Source: Oopsacas minuta (lineage: Eukaryota; Animalia; Porifera). Taken from it: a stretch of DNA of 64,000 bases. The notes under the pieces were generated by a model, which saw only the letters and a list, made by a program, of their open reading frames with translations, was not told the DNA's origin and did no database searches. Location: assembly GCA_024704765.1 (NCBI GenBank), contig JAKMXF010000351.1:62001-126000 (forward strand), read 5' to 3'. Every line of letters starts with the position of its first letter. Positions within the stretch are counted from its first letter, which is position 1. A program made the translations under genes and the position numbers. This document shows positions 1 to 27,181 of the stretch, piece by piece.

Positions 1-442
1 TTGAATTACATTGTGTATATTTAGTGGTAATTACGTAATGAAAGTGTATGGAAATCGAAAAACTCAAATGCCAGAGAAGATTACTTTAGGGACAAAATCC
101 TATGACAATAATACATTATATGCGGGTCAAAATCCTACGATAATAATATATTATATGCGGGTCCAAATCCTACGACAATAATATATTACATGCGGGTCAA
201 AATCCTACAACAATAATACATTATATGCGGGTCAAAATCCTACGACAATAATATATTATATGCAGGTCAGAATCCTACGACAATAATACATTATATGCGG
301 GTCAAAATTCTACGGCTGTAATTAGTGTAATACATTTTGATGCAGGTCAAAATCCTACACATATATTACATCGTAGGATTTTGACCCGCACCATGGATAT
401 GCTATTAGGATTTTGTACTGCTGGTCAAAATCCTACGCAACA
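1..442 (+). mobile_element. Terminus of a second Ginger-family element copy (cut off by the window start)
   Basis: 1-442 is a near-identical reverse complement of 13046-14087 apart from a shorter repeat array, and it ends in the same TIR (...AAAATCCTACGCAACA) followed by GCTC. Confidence 0.9.
90..318 (+). repeat. 35-bp subterminal tandem array (6 full units plus a partial one)
   Basis: Unit GCGGGTCAAAATCCTACGACAATAATATATTATAT with scattered substitutions; the same unit, inverted, forms 13174-13995. Confidence 0.92.
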
Positions 443-3207
443 GCTCTATCTAATAATGTTATTTTTGAAATTCCAAAAAGTTGAGAATGACATCAAAATT
501 CTGTCATAAGTGTCAATTTTATTACAAGTCTATAATTTCCTGAGCCAAGGCCAAAATCAGCCTGGGGTCTTCAAGTTTCTTCAATCAATCCCGAACATAC
601 AATAGATATATACTCGAATACACAGATACATGCCGATTAATCACGTTTTAATAGTTTAGATGTGTATACAGCATAGTTGTCAAGTCTCATGGATCTGAAG
701 TGAGTTTTCACAAATTGTAACCGAATGCCACTTTAACTTTTGCGTGAATCAATACTGCATAGGGAACTTAAAAAGTAGCAAACGAATAAGTTTTCAAATA
801 TATGGCCATGCAACTGAGACACCCTTATGTACATTGGTATTTTCGTAATCGATTGAAAGAACCCCTAGGGCAATATTTCCCAATAAAGGGGTATTTTCGG
901 CCTTTGCGTCAAGTTCGAGTCTTGTACGAAAATACACAGCAATGACGAAATTATGACGTAAGTGTCGTATTTTAGATTTTGGAAGAATCACAGTATTAAC
1001 CGCTGCTCAGATATTACGTATGATAGAAGATTGAAAATGGATCACAGGCACTATTCGATATGCGAAATACCCTTGAAGGCATGATTTTGAAAATTGCAAG
1101 CTCATCATGGAATCATTACGTCACCATGACTGAACCAAATATCGCAAATTGGTAAATTCCCAAAGTTTGATAATTTCGAATTATCAGAGTTTGGAAGCAC
1201 GCGAAAAGTGCCTGCTACTAAAAATACATGTTTGCAAGCAGAGCAGCTCAAGTATGCTCAGGGGACCGAAGTTTGAATGTATCATATGTTATTATAAGTA
1301 CAAACGGCAGAAGCAAGAATAGATTGGCCGTTTAAGGGAGGAGATTTCGGCCTAGAGATACTCCGTGTCTACTGCCTATGTGGGCCTAATATATACAAAG
1401 GTAAAATGAAAGACACGGTAGCTTCCATTTCTTCAGACTGTCTCATCAAATGTATAAATGTCTAAAAGTACTTAAGTAGAGAATCTCTAACTGAGTATCT
1501 TAACCTGTGGTTATATTCCCAAACATGACCACAGTATGCTTACAGAGATTTGTATATGGATTTTGGGTCAAGTTGAAGCTCAATGACCAATTTGACCAAA
1601 CGGGGCCAAATATGACCTAACATGGCAAATTTGACCAAACCTGTCGATCTGGGTGTAGTCATGGTAAAATGTTCTAAACAATGCTACCATATCTCGTGAG
1701 AGTTTGAGCACACCCTGATCTAGAAGAATATGAATACACTGACCAAAATTATTACTTAAACATCACTAAAAATACAATTGCTTAACCTGGCTATATAGAG
1801 ATTATGTAAATATACATACAATACCTAAGAGAACTATTTGACTAGGGTAGGTAATATTGTTCGTGCTAAATCTATGAATATTATCAAATTGGATATTTTC
1901 TAGAGAGATTCAGCTCCTTAAATGTATAATGAACTTATTAATTTTTCAATTGCTAATTGCACAAATTTCAAATTAGATGGAACAATTCTGATGGTAATTC
2001 GGACACATCGTTTGTCGGTTGGACATTTCTTGGGGGATAATTCGTCGCTGAACATTTCGCAAACAAAATGTTTTTATATAGTGTCGGCAGCAGGATTGGA
2101 TGTGGTTTGTGATCTTTTAAGTTGGGCCTTGAGTTGTTTGAACGGCATTTCATTTATATTAGTGAAACCCCTTTTGATGTTGTTTTGGTCCTATTGATAA
2201 GAGCCAAGGTGGTGACATAGGAGTTTGTTTTTCCCGTTCTCAGCGCTCTAAGAAGAAGCTTTCGGTTATCAACAACGGCACATAAACATTTAACACCCTA
2301 AATGGTGTTATAATGTTGACTGTAAAAGTGTAGAAATGTAGATGTTTCAACTGGTGTTTGAAAATTCTTTTGCATTGCTATGACTGTGTGTAATATATAT
2401 AAAGTCAGGAGGTTGCGCATCTTCCACATAGTAATAGCATTCAAAACAAAATTTCAAATAGCAGTTAAAACATCCACATACACTAACTGAACACTTTACT
2501 TGAACAAGGCAGAATACTTTAATTTTACTTGTTATACAGCGAATATTAGAATTCGATAATACACATAAAAGAACTATTAGAGTATGTTCCTTAACATTGG
2601 CCTGACTAAATTTATGAAGAATTTTCCAATTAGATATTTTCTAGACAGACTTTGCTCAGTGAATAGATAATAACAAAATTAATTTTCCAATTCTAAATTG
2701 CTACAAAATTCAAATGAGATGGAACAATTTTGGCCAAAAATCTGGAACGAAAGTGTCCCAATTAATGAAGTTAAATTGATTTCTATTTACTTCTTTGATA
2801 AACACGATAAATACATAGTAATGCGACAATTTATGCCCTACATCCTTTCCTTGACAATGGGCAAACAAAATACAGACCAACTAACAATAATTGAGATGTA
2901 ATAGTATAGATATATGGACGTTCTCAAATCCAGTTGTATTTTCGAAAATTATAAAATACTTTATATTTTACATGGCCACGAAAAAGAATATGAGGCTCGG
3001 CACATATTCAGGGAATACTGTCTTTATGTACAGATTAAGTATTCATTTACACCAATTCATCCGAATGGTGCATGCTTTTCATTGAAACTCTCCTTGCATA
3101 ATTGTAACACAATTTTACAGTAGAGTTATGTCCACCGTATTCCTTCCAGACACCTGAAAAACTTAAAATGTATATTTAGAGTTAAATCTTGTTCAATAAA
3201 CCTTCTC

Positions 3208-12900: not shown

Positions 12901-13173
12901 CCAGTGAGCAGTAACTCCGAGAAATGATTTTGTACCACGAGACCATCCATCCGCAGTTATTGAACTAAATTTTGTTTCGGAGAAGGATTCTTTTATGTTC
13001 CCCTCCATTATTTCAAAAGAAATATCCATATTGCTCCTTAAGGTCTGTTGCGTAGGATTTTGACCCGCAATACAAAATCCTAATAGCATATCCATGGTGC
13101 GGGTCAAAATCCTACGATGTAATATATGCGTAGGATTTTGACCCGCATCAAAATGTATTACACTAATTACAGC

Positions 13174-13995
13174 CGTAGGATTTTGACCCGCATATAATAT
13201 ATTATTGTCGTAGGATTTTGACCCGCATATAATATATTATTATCGTAGGATTTTGACCCGCATATAATATATTATTATCGTAGGATTTTGACCCGCATAT
13301 AATATATTATTATCGTAGGATTTTGACCCGCATATAATATATTATTGTCGTAGGATTTTGATCCGCATATAATATATTATTATCGTAGGATTTTGACCCG
13401 CATATAATATATTATTGTCGTAGGATTTTGACCCGCATATAATATATTATTGTCGTAGGATTTTGACCCGCATATAATATATTATTGTCGTAGGATTTTG
13501 ATCCGCATATAATATATTATTGTCGTAGGATTTTGACCCGCATATAATATATTATTATCGTAGGATTTTGACCCGCATATAATATATTATTATCGTAGGA
13601 TTTTGACCCGCATATAATATATTATTGTCGTAGGATTTTGATCCGCATATAATATATTATTATCGTAGGATTTTGACCCGCATATAATATATTATTGTCG
13701 TAGGATTTTGACCCGCATATAATATATTATTGTCGTAGGATTTTGACCCGCATATAATATATTATTGTCGTAGGATTTTGATCCGCATATAATATATTAT
13801 TGTCGTAGGATTTTGACCCGCATATAATATATTATTGTCGTAGGATTTTGACCCGTATATAATATATTATTGTCGTAGGATTTTGACCCGCATATAATAT
13901 ATTATTGTCGTAGGATTTTGACCCGCATATAATATATTATTATCGTAGGATTTTGACCCGCATATAATATATTATTGTCGTACGATTTTGACTCT
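13174..13995 (-). repeat. 35-bp subterminal tandem array (23 full units plus a partial one)
   Basis: Near-identical unit CGTAGGATTTTGACCCGCATATAATATATTATT(G/A)T at strict 35-bp period. Each unit holds the TIR core and the palindrome ATAATATATTAT. Confidence 0.95.
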
Positions 13996-14932
13996 AAAGT
14001 AATCTTACTTCTCTTTCATTTGACTTTTTCGAATTCCATACACTTTCATTACGTAATTACCACTAAATGTACGTAATGTAATTCAACTTTAGACTAGCTA
14101 TACTTATACGTAACTGAATAAATAAGTCAATTTAGAGTTGGATTCTAGAAAATAGTGAATTTGTTAGATAACATGTAAACTATGTTCCCACTACATATTA
14201 CAAATTTACAATATGTATAATTATCCAAAATGCCAAAAATGGACAGTATACGTATATAAATATTATATATTAATATTACTTGGACAGGAGGTGGTAGGTA
14301 TTTGATAATTGTGTTCAGTAACTCATAATAAATAATAGAATTTAACATGTCAATCTATATATTGCAATATATTCTATCAAATAACAAAAATTTTACAAGC
14401 ATTAGCATGATAATGAATATTCGGAATATCTTAAGTACGAATTGTAGGCGATTTCATCTTTACCCATTTCTCTATACTTCCTAACAAGCTTTAAGGAATA
14501 TACCACTGAGATATGTTCATCTATTGGACAAGCGTAGACTATGCATTTGTTACGGGAGTCTTGGTATAATGTTGATACACATATAGAGTTGAGGTGAAAA
14601 CCGCGAGCCTCTGGCACGCTGCATACTCCTGGAAAACACTAGATTTCTATAAACAAAACAAGTCAGCTGCGGTGGCCTCCTCCTTCCCCTTACAGCCACC
14701 CCCTAACGCTAAACGTCTAACGTTAACCTCACCTTGTTAATTTGTGCAGTGTTGGAGCGAGTTTGATGTGATTGCGATCACACCAAATTCGATTCTAAGC
14801 TGCAACATACACGAATACGTACAATAAATCGTAATTTAACAGACACACGAGGAGCTAACGGACCCCGAACGGCCACAGACAAGGAGACATTAAATAATAA
14901 AAAATAGATAAGAAACTCGCTTGTATCTGATT

Positions 14933-15000
14933 CCATGCTGTATTTCGTCTCGGCGTAGACTCGTCAGTTGCACTGCCTTTCTCGCAATATACTTAGATGG
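14933..15000 (-). ncRNA. Type III hammerhead ribozyme
   Basis: Minus strand reads GUAU-A-UUGC[GAGAAAGGCAGU]GCAA-CUGACGA-GUCU[ACGCCG]AGAC-GAA-AUAC. All core nucleotides and three fully paired stems are present; stem III extends through CCAU/AUGG. Predicted cleavage 3' of AUA, between 14988 and 14987. Confidence 0.85.
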
Positions 15001-15180
15001 TAGAGTGATGATATTCGTCACTGGGGATGTGCTGTTGCAGGTCGCGTTTCCATTATCTGGGCTCACCATGATAGGGATTGCGTTGCCTGAATAACCTCGG
15101 GCAGAGGTCCCCACAAGGTTCGATCTACCTTGCCTTTGAGCGCTTTCGAATGATGGAAAAGAGTCGTGAATCGCTAAGAA

Positions 15181-18100
15181 TTAGTCAGAAGAGTGCAAGA
15201 GGTAGAATACAGTATTGAGTGATCCGATGAAAGTGTCACAGTCCCAAAGTTGGATAATTGGTTCTCTCATTCCGTCATATTTATAGAATTGCCCGTTTTG
15301 GTAAAGGATTGAATAGAAGTGTCTATTACTCAATATGCTAAAGCCAGCAAGTTGGTAGTGAAGTGTCCGTTGGTTGTGACTGATGGTAAAGTGTTTGTCA
15401 ATATCGCTTACAAAAATGTCTGGCAATTCGCGTAGATGTCCGATTTCAATTGTTAGCATGACAGGTATTGACTTGAATTGACCAGATATCCTCTCTAAGA
15501 CAGCAGTAGTTGATCCACAAGACTTGCATTTAATAGGAACGAGACGTCGATTAACGGATGATTCCAGGTTTGTAATAACGCCTCCTATATTACTAATCAT
15601 GGATTGTGTCTCAAAGATATTGGTGCATTGGTGGCATTGGAAGATAGTGAAATATTTGTCGTTACACAAATCTTCTGTTCGTAAATATTTGATGATGTTA
15701 CCCTCTGATCCAAAGAAATCATAAGACCGTATCAATCCTGAGGAATCATAAATAACTTCAAGCCCAATTTTAGTAGCAACATATACTCGAAGTTTCTCAA
15801 ATTCACAATTAGCAGCCAATTGGAATATGTAATGGAATTCAGCTTCAGTATGTGTACTTCCGATTAACTTCAGTGAGTCTATGATGGTTGCTTTATTCGA
15901 ACTAAGAATAGCCAATATATTGTCGATAGAACAGGTGTTAGATTGCACGATGTTGTTATACTCTCCTCCCCATTTAGGATATGGGATAAGATCTGATGCA
16001 TTTTGTATAGATTGTTCTGGTATTTCAATGATCTCATGAACTTGCTCAGTTGGGAATATTAACTCAATTATTACTGGTAATAGAACAGCAATTGGATAGT
16101 CAAGATCTCTTCGTGTCTCTTCAGGTATTTCAGTAGGATAGGAGGAACGATATTCTGCGTACCAATTACCGGCTGATACAGCAAGTTTCTCCTTAATCTC
16201 AAAATTTAGTTCGTTGGGTGGATGGTAAGAATATAGTAAATTCAATGAAGTTAGAGATGCAGCTTTTGTAGCGAGTTTCTCATGTAGTTGGGTTAAGTAT
16301 GTGTTATTGACAAGAGCTGATAGTATTCGAGGTTTCAATTGAAGTAGCTCAGAGTCGATATTTTCATAGATTGAGTGTTGTTGCGGTGTTTCAAATGTTT
16401 CTTCCATGGTATCCAGGTTCAATATATCATCCAAAGAATCTAAATACATAATAAATATGTGAAATGTAGGATTGCTATTACGTATTAATCGAATCAATAC
16501 AGAACACAGCTAGTTTATATGTACTTAATCATGGGCTGAGTCAATTAGTTATAGTTCAGTACAATATTGTCTTGCTAATATATTTACCGCTAGAAGGGAA
16601 TTTGCAAGATCTTTTGGGCTTCTTTGATTTGCCTGTCTTCGTTCGAACCTGCCGTTTTTCGCTCATGCGAGAATGATATTTTCTTGATAGATGGATAGGT
16701 AATTTTGTTGTTTTGCTATCTGGGTCTTTGCGAGCAACTAGGTCGCTTGGTTTAACTTCCTCTATCATATATGGTCCCAAATATTTCATTGCATCTTTTG
16801 TTCCTGGGAGTCGCTTGGCTTTCTTTATATTATGTACAAGTACCTCATCTCCTTCCACAAATTCTGATCTAAAGTTTACACAATGATTATACAAAGAATT
16901 ATAATGTGCCAATTACGTACAGTTTGTAATGATGATAATTATATAACTAAAAGTAAGTGTTTTGGAATTTAAGAATTCATATAATTGAGGAAACAATAAA
17001 TTAGTTCCGATTCAAGACTATTTCATATTTACCTGATTATACAACAGTCAGTGAATTTAATTTAATTTTAGTAAGAGATGATGTATGAAATTCCAACATG
17101 TTACATCACAAAAGAATGTGTTCCGTTATTTCATACCTGTTGTGTTTAACTTTGCCGTTATATGTTCTCTTTTGAACTTTCTGGCCTGCCTTGATGTTTT
17201 CAATAGCATTCATTCTGTCAGCTTTACGTGTGGAAGAAAGATTCTCTATCCATTCGTTATCAGTTATAGGCAAGTCAAATGGGCGTGGTTCGTTTGCATC
17301 CATTTGAATATTCTCATCTTCTGATACTTCTGCCTCTGAGACATCAGCTTCGGTTAGTAATCCGGGGTTAGTTGGAGAAGTGATAAGATTGAGAAGGTTA
17401 GATGAATCAGAGTCTCTCCCAAACATGAGATAAAAGGGTGTGTAGCTTGTAGAGATTTTGGTTTGAGTATTTACTGCTAGTACTGCTGTCTGTAATTTCT
17501 CTGTCCATTCAGTGTCCCCTTCAGATTGCATCTTGTTGATTTTTCTATTTGTAAAAGTGTTAAATTGATTCAAAGCTATCTAATTATAAACGACGTGTAT
17601 TAAACGTATGTAAGGCTTTGAATAGATATATATTTATATTTAGCATCAATACTTACGTTTTCAATATTTTGTTGTGTGACTCAACAAGTCCGTTACTTTG
17701 TAGGTGGTATGATGTGGTTCTTCTGGTGTTGATATTTATCTTCTTGTGAAATTCCTGAAATTGCTATTTTGAAAGTAAATAAGAGAACAATGACAATCTA
17801 CTACGCGCATGTATTTAGTCTTGTACAACAATAGTAAGAAAGATAAAACGATTAATAAGGTAAATTTTCCTCCCGAAGTTAGTAGCATTAATTCGTAAAT
17901 TCTTATTTATTAGTATTTAACATAAATTATAATCCAATTTTCCACACGGTTTCTTAAATATAGCGATCAGGACGCATAATTTCCTACCAGGGTATATATT
18001 GAAGCAATGCGTTGACAATTGACAATGCAACTTGTTACGTACGTATATCCAATATAGTAAGTTGCATTGTGTATCAGGAATAATTCTTTGGTGTATTTAC

Positions 18101-19492
18101 AATTACTAATCTCGAGTATGTAAAAATATGAGTTACCTTGCTTGAGAATTCTGTTCCCTGATCATGTTGGAGGATGTTAGGCACACCGAATGAGAGATAA
18201 ATTTCCTGTAAACAATCCAATATTTCTTTAGATGTTTTAGTCTTGAGTGGTCGGGCAATTACAAATTTACTCAGGTAGCACACGATGACAAGAATGTGCT
18301 GAAATCCAAGTACAGTGCGAGACATATTACATATGAGATCAATTCCACAATGACACCATGGTTCTTCAGGAGGAGGAATAGGTTGAAGCTCTCGTTGTGG
18401 CTGAGGAGGTAGAGCAGCAGAGGTTTGACAGTCATGGCAAGTTCGGATCTAGGACGGGAAATGATTTAATTGTCAGTTTGCAGTCCTGTCTTAATGTAAT
18501 TTGCTACGTCCCAGATGTCCCACTAAATTAGCATTCCGTCCCGCTTTTTCTTCACTCAGGTTGGCAAATATGTTTATGTGAAATACTCCCACTACCTATC
18601 CCAATTACTAACTACCGCAAGGATCATTAGTTGTTAGATACATGATTGGTTGGTTGTACCGCACAAATAGATTTCCATATGATAAAATTGTATACCGGTA
18701 TACTAAATATCATCAGATCGCACAAATAATGGTGTATACAGTAGAATAATTACAAGGTGAATAACCTCAAACTATAAAATACATCCTGTTCTCAGACTTA
18801 CCAACCCCTTTTGCAAATTTCCCTGGATTTTATCGTTGCTAAATCCCTGGATTTCAAAATTTGTAATCCAGGTATCCCTGGAGGGTTGGTAAGTCTGTGT
18901 TCTCAGCCACATTTTCTTGGAAATCATATATGAAAGAAATACGTAATTTAGTAACTCACGTAGGATCCAACATCATTGTATATACCATTCCAATCATATT
19001 TGTTTCGGATTCCATCGATGGTAGTGTTGATTCCAGGATGAGTGACATTGTGATAGAATCCGATAATGTTGTTAATTTCTGAGACTAGTGGAATCTCCAA
19101 GTATTTCACACAGCCATTCTTCTTTCTGAAAATCTACAAGAAACTTATTCTAGTTAAACGCTGAGGTTATAGGTAGCATTGAGGGGCAGAGGAGCCCCCT
19201 AGCGTTTTCGCCCTTCTCATCTCCCCATTGTACGCAAATTTAATGAGGCAACTACATATCTGCCTCCTCGCAGGTATGTAGTTACCTCAAGATTTCTAAT
19301 TATGTCTTGGAAATATGTATAAATCAAAAATATCATTCAGGAATATACCTTCATTAGCTTATTCTCTTGAAAGTAAATCCCCTTGCACTTTCTGACAAAA
19401 TTCTTCTTTCTGTAGCGATCACTCTTGATTTCTGGTGGGATAATATTCGTCTGGAGGTATCCACGAATTGCTTCATGCTCTGTCGCATCCAT
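15181..19492 (-). CDS. Spliced Ginger transposase: integrase (H2C2-DDE-GPY/F) fused to a USP-like cysteine protease, ~894 aa
   Basis: Exons 19492-19349, 19133-18960, 18448-18137, 17763-17657, 17544-17137, 16868-16588 and 16439-15181 join through GT-AG introns with matching phases (2,685 nt, no internal stop found). Motifs: YHNVTHPG...W...DV..YIRTCHDC; GIDL, HDQGTEF, SNGLVE with D-35-E spacing; TPFYLMFGR; FVEGDEVL...YLGPY; NTCSIDN and HFYS...YDG. Confidence 0.85.
18793..18897. mobile_element. 105-bp MITE in intron 2 of the Ginger gene
   Basis: TIR CAGACTTACCAACCC / GGGTTGGTAAGTCTG flanked by the direct repeat TGTTCT on both sides. Confidence 0.7.
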
Positions 19493-21372
19493 AATGAAAA
19501 ATGCCAAAAGTAAATATAAGTGTTTGATATTGAAATCTAGAAACAAAGTAAAATGTTAGTGTGTGCATTTAGGACGTCACACATGTATAAATACGAATAC
19601 TATGTGACTAGGGATGAAATATTGATATTACTTGATTTGCAATTGCTACTTGCGGATCAAAATCCTACGCGGGTCAAAATCCTACGCAACAGGTCTCGTG
19701 GCACAGAATGTGACATTTTGGAGCTAGACGTAGGATAAGATTACGAAATGACTTAGATCGTACAAGCGCAAGAGGTTCACAATCATCAATAATATGTTTC
19801 ATGTTTACTGTATCCAATTCTTTCTGACATATGAAAGGTTTTACAAGTATCAGAATCTATAAACGGGTCTATTTTCGACTGCTTTGCACGCAGTTCATCT
19901 TGGATGAATATCCTCATGCTTTGAAAGCTTAAACATGCTCTCAATATAACCTCACTTCGATAGTGACATCAATAATGAAGATTAGGTAAATTCATACAAG
20001 ATAAACCTTGCACAATACAATAATAATGACTCAGAATGTTTTCGCAAAGAATCCGTTACTCCAACCGAACTGTAATGCCCATATCTATGGTTGTTTATTA
20101 AACAGAAATGTAGAATCAATGCATTCTACGAATGAATGTTACAAAATGTTGAACACAAATTTGGAACAATTATCTAAGCATAAAAAGGGTACAATTATAG
20201 AATGTTACACCCCTAACTTTTGCAAGATGGTAAAAATCGCTATATGAGCCGTATAGAGCATGTCGAGAGATGAAAAGTGTGCTAGAGATTTCGAAAATCT
20301 TGTCAAGAAACAAAATAGTTACAGCAATTCTAGCTTATAAGCCAAAGTCTATGGGGAAAATTGCAACTTCATTGAAGCCAAATATATTACAATAATAGTG
20401 TTGCAAATAGCATAGTAGTGTGCATACAATACTACAACATACCTAATTAACATTTCAATGTCTAAGTAATTTGTGTTACCTATTAATCATTCTCTTAATC
20501 TCCAAATAAATAGACATATTCAATAAACATACAATCTGCAATAATGATATTCTGTTAATTAACTACATATCAAGAGATTATTTAGTATCTACTTGAACTT
20601 AAATGGAGACAGTTGTTAGTTCTATTCCTCGGGTATCACATCTTCTAATAATCTCCAGCGATTCTTTTTCGTTTGATTAATGTAAAGCCCACTATACACA
20701 ATGCAACTATGTTGTACCGTGTATTATGGGATGGCATGCACAAAATTTTTGCATCGTGTGTATTGATCGTTGCATGCCAAAATGTTGCACATAAATATTG
20801 TTGCATGCGTAAGGGGGCTTAAAACAAAGCTTTCAATGAAATTTTAGAAATTTATCAAATCATACTATACCACAGGACACCTTTTACACTTGCATGAAAC
20901 TTCTATTGCAACCGATTTGCCTGAAACTGTATTTCATGGTATGCATATTTTTGGTTGTTTGTCTGGAATTGATTGAGAACTTATAAGAACTAATGACTTT
21001 ATTTTGCATGGGGTTGTGGGATACTCTATCTAGCAACTTTTGGGATAACTAATGCAAGAGTTTCTTTGTGAATCAATTCAAATTGTATTAGTAAATACAG
21101 TATTGGGTTCACTGATTAAGGCCCAAAATTCGAGCAAATTCCCATATAAGGAAACTGGAATTAGGACGAAAATTATTCATTACTCCAGTAACAAACAGCC
21201 TTATAACAAAGTCTGTTAAAGCCTCTGCATCTTACAGTTCAGGGGGCTGCTTGCTACAGGACCCCAGAATTGTAGGACAAGGAGACTTTCACGTACTTGG
21301 TTATATGGCTGTTTGCTATTAAAGTAATGAATAATTGTCGGACTTAGTCATGTTTCAAAATAAAGAGGAATA

Positions 21373-25490: not shown

Positions 25491-27181
25491 CTTAGATACA
25501 ATCTCTTGTTAGCTAATTACTAGTTTTTCATAGTTGCTGAATATTTACGTGAGAATCAAATAGTTCTTGTTCTTCAAACATTGGAACCAGTCATGGGCTC
25601 AAACCATTTAAAAAGTAGTATATTTGACAATACTATACACAGATATTATTTATATTGTTCAAAATTTGTTCCGTTGATAGCGGGAAGAATGCCATTGTTT
25701 GCTGTATATCACACAATAGAGACCCTTTTGTTATAATTATTAAATATAAAAATATTGTATATTGTATGTTTACTAAATATGTCTATTTTCTTGGAGATGT
25801 TAAGAGATTGATAAATACGTAGCAAAAATTACTTATGCATTGGAATGCTAATTAGGTATGTTGTAGTATTGTATGCAAACTACTATACTATTTGCGACAC
25901 TATTATTGTAATATATTTGGTTTCAATGAAGTTGCAAATTCTCCAAAGACTTTGGCTTATAAGCTAGAATTGCTGTAACTATTTTGTTTCTTGACAAGAT
26001 TTTAGAAATCTCTAGCCCAATCTTCATCTCTCAACATGCTCTATAACGGCTCTTATAGCGATTTTTACAATCTTACGAAAGTTGTAGGTGTAACATTCTA
26101 TAATTTTACCCATAAAAATGCTGAAGATAGCCGCATCTAAAGTATACAAAGATGATTGAACAAATGATTGGAATTTTTTGTGCAAAATTGTGTCGTGATC
26201 TCACATCCGATCCTTAAAAAAACAATGATCGCCTATCGTCGCCCGATCTTCAAAAAAGTATCGCGATCAATGGTCGTACGATCCAAACGCCCTAATAACA
26301 GGGGATAGAGGTATTTATGAAGAAAAATTATGTACATCCATAACCTTAAAAATGTAATTATTCATCATCTGGATTATGGATAAGAATATATAAAATGGAA
26401 CTGAACTAATACTTCGAAGCTAAGTTTAAGAATTTACTACTGTGGAATATATTTCGAAAAGACCATGCAATATGTAGACTAGTATGAGTCTAAAATGTTA
26501 CAAAATTCTTGATATTTTTGCCCTTTTGGAGGTCATGTCGTATTACCTCTCTTAGAATGAAAATTTGTAATGTAAAGCGAAAACAACTACTATTTACTAT
26601 TTGTTCATTCATTAGTATAGAGTTACATCCAAGGATTCTTCATGCATACTAATATTGTTATCAGGAAAGTCTTCAAAAATATTTCTATAAATGTTATAGG
26701 CACTTGAATTTGGATTTATTAAGATTATGATTTGTTCTTTGATGACCATTGAAAACTACTTGTATAATTCTTATATTCGTGACTTCGTTTAATTAGACAT
26801 CAAAGGATTAATATGTGGTTAGTAATAGTCAATGGTGATGCGTTTTATAACTTTCTTAAGAGCTAATAATAGATTGTCATTACGTCACTTTTATTAGAAT
26901 CCTTAAATATATTCAACATGCTAAATCCATTTTCACACTTTTGGATAAATACTATGTAATTGTATTGTTGGTTTTATGAATAAAGTTAAAGTAGTTGAAA
27001 TCTCGAAATATACTTAGAGAATCGCTCTCAACAGATAATAAGGGGTAATTAAGTATACTGAACCCGAATATGATATTTTGAATATTTCTTGCTATTTAGG
27101 TGTATAAAGTAAATAATTTTCTAATTAATCCCAGAAACTTGCTTACAACAGTTATACTGGGGTAATCGGGTACGCTGGTTA

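Follow-up and report, generated by a model that had tools for sequence, protein, structure and literature searches.

A probable type III hammerhead ribozyme in the transposase-gene 3' UTR of a Ginger-like DNA transposon from the glass sponge Oopsacas minuta

Described hammerhead ribozymes and Ginger transposons

Hammerhead ribozymes of eukaryotes are carried by retroelements (Penelope-like elements and retrozymes), by satellites, by a few introns and by one 3' UTR. The rodent Clec2 hammerhead is a discontinuous ribozyme located in the 3' UTR of a protein-coding host mRNA. Type III hammerheads (Rfam RF00008) occur in viroid and satellite RNAs, in plant LTR retrozymes and in the amniote intronic ribozymes HH9 and HH10. 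Ginger1 elements encode a C-terminal OTU or ULP1 domain, and to our knowledge no ribozyme has been described for Ginger. A literature search for hammerheads together with Ginger, DNA transposon, transposase or Porifera found no such association, in agreement with an earlier note on this DNA, the author of which knew of no hammerhead described in Ginger or any other cut-and-paste element.

The hammerheads of animals are mostly of type I and are tied to Penelope-like elements and non-LTR retrozymes, and those of type III belong to plant LTR retrozymes (bioRxiv 10.64898/2026.07.22.740005). The ribozymes of Penelope-like elements and retrozymes are located in terminal or tandem repeats, are usually of type I, and process the RNA intermediate of transposition (PMC6431247; bioRxiv 10.64898/2026.07.22.740005). 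Ginger1 and Ginger2 are DNA transposons (Bao, Kapitonov and Jurka 2010, cited by PMC6431247).

The present analysis concerns 64,000 nucleotides of an Oopsacas minuta contig (JAKMXF010000351.1, positions 62,001 to 126,000), referred to as the window. On the minus strand of the window, a Ginger-like element carries a motif that is probably a true type III hammerhead preserved by evolution. The motif is located in the 3' UTR of the transposase gene, where it forms a module with a conserved block of 136 nt, and it would be expected to cleave itself. For an early-branching animal to carry a constrained ribozyme in the 3' UTR of DNA transposons would add to the roles in which self-cleaving RNA is known.

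The element and its hammerhead motif

The motif is carried by an element of 6.6 kb (window 13046-19691), the gene of which is on the minus strand, with ORFs running from 18325 to 15181. The features of the element are listed below in window coordinates.

13042-13045, with its partner at 19692-19695, no strand: target-site duplication GGTC (4 bp)
13046-13068, no strand: 3' terminal inverted repeat TGTTGCGTAGGATTTTGACCCGC; the homology of a neighbouring copy stops here (13045/13046)
13174-13992, no strand: subterminal array, 23 copies of a 35-bp unit containing a motif like the terminal inverted repeat
14374-14932, minus: transcribed tail 3' of the hammerhead, not conserved between families (RNA-like depth; 35% identity just after the hammerhead)
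14933-15000, minus: type III hammerhead (sequence, Rfam alignment, custom model R1, covariation)
15001-15013, minus: variable spacer from block to hammerhead, 13 to about 60 nt in other families
15014-15149, minus: 136-nt conserved block between stop codon and hammerhead (family alignments; 87% mean pairwise identity)
15181-16439, minus: last coding exon, C-terminal domain, ORF D (ORF; splice joint 16439|16588 with GT..AG)
16588-16868, minus: internal coding exon (ORF; joints 16439|16588 and 16868|17137 in run X2)
17137-17544, minus: internal coding exon (ORF; joints 16868|17137 and 17544|17657)
18077-18325, minus: ORF piece with a match to the integrase core, rve (Pfam PF00665, E 2.2e-7)
19669-19691, no strand: 5' terminal inverted repeat ...GCGTAGG..CGCAACA

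The terminal repeats are 23 bp long, have TGT..ACA ends and are inverted, not direct; LTRs are not present. Close protein homologues belong to Oopsacas minuta, and the gene model P0004 carries both PF00665 (rve) and PF17921 (H2C2). The inverted repeats, the TGT..ACA ends, the GGTC duplication and the rve and H2C2 domains together fit a Ginger-like cut-and-paste DNA transposon. Ginger1 and Ginger2 likewise have an rve and H2C2 transposase, TGT..ACA inverted ends, a 4-bp target duplication and a C-terminal cysteine-protease-like domain. The C-terminal domain of the sponge element differs in its predicted USP-like fold, which is not OTU or ULP1. A scan for reverse transcriptase, which covered the four ORFs of 80 aa or more, gave no match.

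ORF D (438 aa; ORF at 15184-16497, minus) has no Pfam match, and a profile search with it against PDB sequences returned nothing; only the fold search gave a match. With its predicted structure (pLDDT 71), Foldseek matched solely the ubiquitin-specific proteases USP46, USP18 and USP12 (E about 1e-7, TM 0.35-0.48), which points to a USP-like cysteine-protease fold. Two motifs were noted in the same ORF: NTC..D, which is invariant, and KCKxCG, which is like a zinc ribbon. Window positions 1-443 hold the 3' end of a second copy of the element in opposite orientation, including part of the 35-bp array, and the body of that copy is located just before the window (C351:60795-61394). A pair of 360-bp inverted repeats, 89% identical (20187-20543 and 25753-26111), is found just outside the element.

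The minus strand from 15000 to 14933, read from the window, is CCAUCUAAGUAUA/UUGCGAGAAAGGCAGUGCAACUGACGAGUCUACGCCGAGACGAAAUACAGCAUGG, and the hammerhead core and stems span 14940-14992. Stem I is formed by UUGC(G) at 14987-14983 with (U)GCAA at 14972-14968, stem II by GUCU at 14960-14957 with AGAC at 14950-14947, and stem III by GUAU at 14992-14989 with AUAC at 14943-14940; the outer CCAU/AUGG is at 15000-14997 and 14936-14933. The core stretches are CUGACGA (14967-14961) and GAAA (14946-14943). Every invariant hammerhead base is present in the window copy (C3 U4 G5 A6 N7 G8 A9, G12 A13 A14, A15.1-U16.1, and H17, not G), with A17 at 14988 and U16.1 at 14989 pairing with A15.1 at 14943. Helix III is open and helices I and II are closed by loops, which is the type III topology. 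Cleavage is predicted 3' of A14988, i.e. at 14988|14987, at an AUA site about 193 nt beyond the stop codon of the last ORF (15183-15181), and the whole motif is within the inverted ends of the element (13046 and 19691). The description given in the earlier note (core, stems I to III, outer CCAU/AUGG, AUA and the place of the predicted cut, 14988|14987) was confirmed in the sequence. Its assignment to type III is borne out by the open helix III, the full core and comparative pairing, and its placement on the sense strand, some 190 nt past the stop codon and inside the terminal inverted repeats, was also correct.

Like the described type III hammerheads, the sponge motif has the core CUGANGA and GAAA, a UH cleavage site, three helices with helix III open, and loops 1 and 2 placed such that a contact is possible. 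It differs from them in scoring under the Rfam threshold, in its short stems (5, 4 and 4-7 bp), and in being present once per element in an animal DNA transposon, not in a circular RNA or an LTR. At the Rfam gathering thresholds there was no match in the whole window. A search with Rfam Hammerhead_3 (RF00008), suggested earlier as a check, did align the family to the site under relaxed settings, at 16.9 bits (E=1), which is below the gathering score of 48.5 bits. Taken alone, the sequence gives no thermodynamic signal (z=0.08). In most copies another fold is predicted to be more stable than the hammerhead, by 1-5 kcal/mol, and in the window copy, too, the minimum-energy fold is not the hammerhead. 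A descriptor scan, which required the core and three 4-bp stems with G-U allowed, identified the motif as the only site in the window, and 30 Mb of random sequence matched in composition yielded no site; the motif is therefore not explained by composition chance. Function is not demonstrable from a single sequence, and it is the comparison of copies and families that decides the case.

Conservation among copies, families and genomes

More than 40 places in the 61-Mb genome match the 600 nt around the motif. The motif was present in all 30 fetched copies of the window family (93-100% identical), with scattered private changes. At 14972 all 30 read C in place of the U of the window, so that helix I of the family consists of five Watson-Crick pairs; this private C>U change leaves the window with G-U as the fifth pair of stem I, where every other copy has G-C. 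The window copy thus appears to be a slightly weakened member of its family, with a G-U at the end of stem I and a stem III of just 4 bp. Older copies (79-87% identical) have core changes, e.g. U4 to A or G12 to A, as well as changes in helix II. Such core changes are expected from decay and carry little weight either way. A search of the whole genome with RF00008 identified better hammerheads elsewhere, the best with 36.9 bits (E 5.9e-5), still under threshold. The custom covariance model R1 scores the window site at 76.8 bits (C351:76928-77002), and the custom covariance model built from the alignment identified at least 106 sites genome-wide.

Other families were read within 6-kb loci. Family A (L042-44, L053) is Ginger-like, with homologues of rve and of two more ORFs (B/C) upstream on the same strand. 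Its end is ...CGCAACA, as in the element of the window, and the block and hammerhead follow its last ORF. This last ORF is unrelated to the USP-like ORF of the window, yet the same module follows it, which indicates that the C-terminal domain was swapped and the RNA module kept. The last ORF of family A (L043:2322-2795) may resemble OTU proteases. Three regular-expression matches in L044 had the appearance of tandem hammerheads; two were chance matches in the flanking repeat, and there is no retrozyme-like arrangement. Family B (L041, L046, L047, L049-52) is a repeat of about 1.8 kb without a long ORF, in which both the block and the hammerhead are present at 78-83% identity. Its ends are CACAGTGGCTT.../...AAGCCACTGTG (CACAGTG), with 5-bp duplications TGGAG and CATGA, so by its ends family B is not Ginger. 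One family B copy (L041:2446-4247) is inserted in a Tc1/mariner transposase gene, with an HTH_Tnp_Tc3_2 match in the flank. The hammerhead of family C (L040:1524-3068) has GUC as its cleavage site, differs in helix I (UUAAG/CUUGA) and is not accompanied by the 136-nt block; it is located about 200 nt after a Mutator-like transposase ORF (PF20700, 2e-14) and a PHD-finger ORF on the same strand. Three other copies of family C (L045, L048, L056) are degraded.

Homologues of the last ORF, 47-62% identical, were identified in ENA assemblies, and eight contigs from five assemblies were fetched. The module is found directly after the homologous ORF, 8-140 nt past the stop codon, in seven of the eight contigs, and about 2 kb downstream in the eighth (L073). 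The hammerhead core is intact in six of the eight, with one core change each in L060 and L072. In the flanks of L057 and L059, which come from two assemblies, O. minuta matches only diverged repeats (66-77% over the longer matches) and none that are near-identical, and at least those two assemblies therefore represent other organisms. The contig of the most distant homologue (P0021, 35% identity) is 1.6 kb long and ends 34 nt past the stop codon, and it is uninformative on the motif.

Mean pairwise identity between family representatives is 86% in the hammerhead, and between families it is 87% in the 136-nt block, 60% in the last 900 nt of coding sequence and 35% in the 12 nt after the hammerhead. 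The constraint on the hammerhead therefore exceeds that on the transposase coding sequence. One idea in the earlier note was that the hammerhead is a relic of the retroelement ancestry of Ginger integrases. Two results speak against it: a related hammerhead also follows the Mutator-like transposase gene, which has no such ancestry, and the hammerhead is under present constraint, 86% against 60% for coding DNA.

The covariation alignment of the hammerhead comprised 21 sequences. Its three helices are 83.6% paired, compared with 21-46% when the partners are slid, and helices I, II and III are paired at 90.5%, 95.2% and 71.9%, respectively. The core columns are invariant or nearly so. Changes on both sides were found in six pairs, and the changes in stems II, III and I are compensatory or wobble-compatible. 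For example, pair 10.4/11.4 is CG (n=10), UA (n=6) or UG (n=3), and pair 16.2/15.2 is GC (n=18) or AU (n=2), the AU being a double change in the family of the window. Helix I pairs are replaced in the variant of the Mutator-like family C. The covariation score was 0.180 against 0.03-0.07 for slid partners and was reached by 5 of 500 shuffles. Covariation across copies and relatives, which the earlier note had put forward as a check, was thus found in the form of compensatory stem changes around this core. The contact between loop 1 (GGC) and loop 2 (GCC) proposed in that note received modest comparative support, being 85.7% paired with three double changes, a level that 3 of 500 shuffles reach; its middle pair is broken in seven sequences, and it is retained as a candidate tertiary contact.

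The 136-nt block, which the earlier note did not include, starts about 30 nt past the stop codon and, with the hammerhead, forms a module of fixed order after that codon. Variation in the block is concentrated in two hairpin loops, and several of the changes in its stems replace C by U across from G, so that the pair survives only on the sense strand. RNAalifold gave a weak consensus (-14.7 kcal/mol). A hand-drawn fold with several hairpins is 94% paired; this fold was derived from the consensus, has just two compensatory changes and is not distinct from shuffles, for which reasons it is a candidate only. The block matched no Rfam family. A tRNA was considered, as there is a T-loop-like GGTTCGAT on the opposite strand, and was rejected when ARAGORN gave no tRNA. 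A coding function was also rejected: frame 1 is stopped by a TGA, indels are not multiples of three, and the most variable positions are second codon positions in a proposed hairpin loop. A 22-mer of the block had eight matches in JGI metagenome contigs, all in one unrelated gene without flanking similarity, and these were regarded as chance. From its pattern of conservation the block appears to be an RNA-level element that may fold into several hairpins, and it is a candidate new RNA element that is directly testable.

These comparisons bear on the reading that the conservation acts at the level of DNA, e.g. as a transposase-binding or enhancer site with an incidental likeness to a hammerhead, or that the motif is an inactive chance match. 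Rfam scores under threshold, the missing thermodynamic signal and the little covariation in the block would agree with it. It is nevertheless very unlikely, as the random sequence held no descriptor match, none of the 11 invariant core bases differs between families, whereas the stems vary by paired substitutions, and substitutions are G-U-compatible on the sense strand only.

It was also considered whether the block and hammerhead are a passenger cassette, such as a relic of a ribozyme-bearing RNA element, which was copied between transposon families, so that their similarity reflects recent exchange and not function. Such a cassette would account for the same module in the ORF-less 1.8-kb element with CACAGTG ends and a 5-bp duplication, for the Mutator-like element that has the hammerhead without the block, for the sharp borders of homology at the start of the block and the end of the hammerhead, and for the unrelated last ORF before the module in family A. 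Several observations make this unlikely. First, the position and orientation after the stop codon are constant, in different genomes, though the coding DNA is only about 60-70% identical. Secondly, the changes are compensatory or confined to loops. Lastly, each element has a single hammerhead, and the motif is not flanked by a duplication of its own or by a terminal repeat. Its retention in 30 of 30 copies and in other families, without its own duplication, also upholds the earlier view that it is part of the element and not a nested insertion.

Similarity to the ribozymes of Penelope-like elements and retrozymes is limited to this being a mobile-element hammerhead that is kept across families. 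Those systems are retroelements, whereas the sponge element has inverted ends, an integrase-type transposase and one 3'-UTR ribozyme, with no reverse transcriptase match in the scanned ORFs. Ribozymes in flanking terminal or tandem repeats, in a retroelement context, were not found. The comparative data instead place the hammerhead as an integral, conserved part of the 3' region of the transposase gene in Ginger-like elements, on the sense strand and, L073 apart, some 200 nt past the stop codon.

Transcripts and the proposed role

The region was covered by four runs from one study (X1-X4), and depth and joints were read from contigs, over a stretch without the 35-bp array. Run X2 contains GT..AG joints on the minus strand at 16439|16588, 16868|17137 and 17544|17657. 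Depth falls about 4- to 100-fold over the introns in X1 and X2 and is flat in X3 and X4. These joints and dips mark X1 and X2 as RNA-like and show that the gene is expressed and spliced. RNA-like contigs extend about 600 nt past the hammerhead, with exon-like or higher depth, to about 14374, although contigs conceal the RNA ends; beyond about 14374 the depth in X2 drops about 30-fold. In both X1 and X2, exon depth is at its lowest in the bin with the hammerhead. Downstream depth is as high as upstream depth, so any cleavage in vivo is partial or the 3' fragment is stable. Also, transcripts run about 600 nt past the site, and a simple picture in which the ribozyme defines the 3' end is thus not evident.

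The high downstream depth bears on whether the ribozyme serves the downstream part: it might release or limit the 3' tail, as a barrier to read-through into the array and inverted end (avoiding double-stranded RNA), or make a separate RNA with a 5'-OH. The 3' product would keep nearly the whole ribozyme, RNA-like depth over the 600 nt past the site equals or exceeds that of the exons, and the repeats are in inverted orientation at the two ends of the element, all of which would suit this role. The sequence past the hammerhead is only 35% identical between families, while the block before it is conserved, and RNA depth ends near 14374, ahead of the array at 13992, which indicates that transcripts seem to stop unaided. 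A role in the downstream part is, on balance, quite unlikely.

The maintained hammerhead and block are better accommodated by an action on the transposase mRNA itself. In the transcript, the hammerhead would cut itself at 14988|14987. The cut would split the ORF and the block, with a new 3' end bearing a 2',3'-cyclic phosphate, from the non-conserved tail of about 600 nt, and the tail fragment would carry nearly the whole ribozyme. A transposase mRNA without its normal tail would result. The block, staying on this mRNA, may serve as a 3'-end element in stability, export or translation; alternatively, the cut may merely lower transposase output. The rodent Clec2 hammerhead is alike in its 3'-UTR location, where cleavage would detach the coding part from the tail. 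The sponge ribozyme differs from it in being compact, in belonging to a transposase gene and in being coupled to a conserved upstream block. The sponge system is well suited to asking what becomes of an mRNA after ribozyme cleavage.

A broader proposal, offered tentatively and itself doubtful, is that DNA transposons of at least two unrelated superfamilies in glass sponges (Ginger-like and Mutator-like) routinely form the 3' ends of their transposase mRNAs by ribozyme, and that in the Ginger lineage the 136-nt structured RNA stands in for the poly(A) tail in mRNA stability or translation. If true, cut-and-paste elements would possess a ribozyme-based module for expression, of a kind not known in eukaryotes.

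In run X1, summed contig depth over the whole element is greatest in the stretch of the tail at 14536-14697 (minus). A stable 3' fragment, 3' bias or additional copies of that part could each account for this peak.
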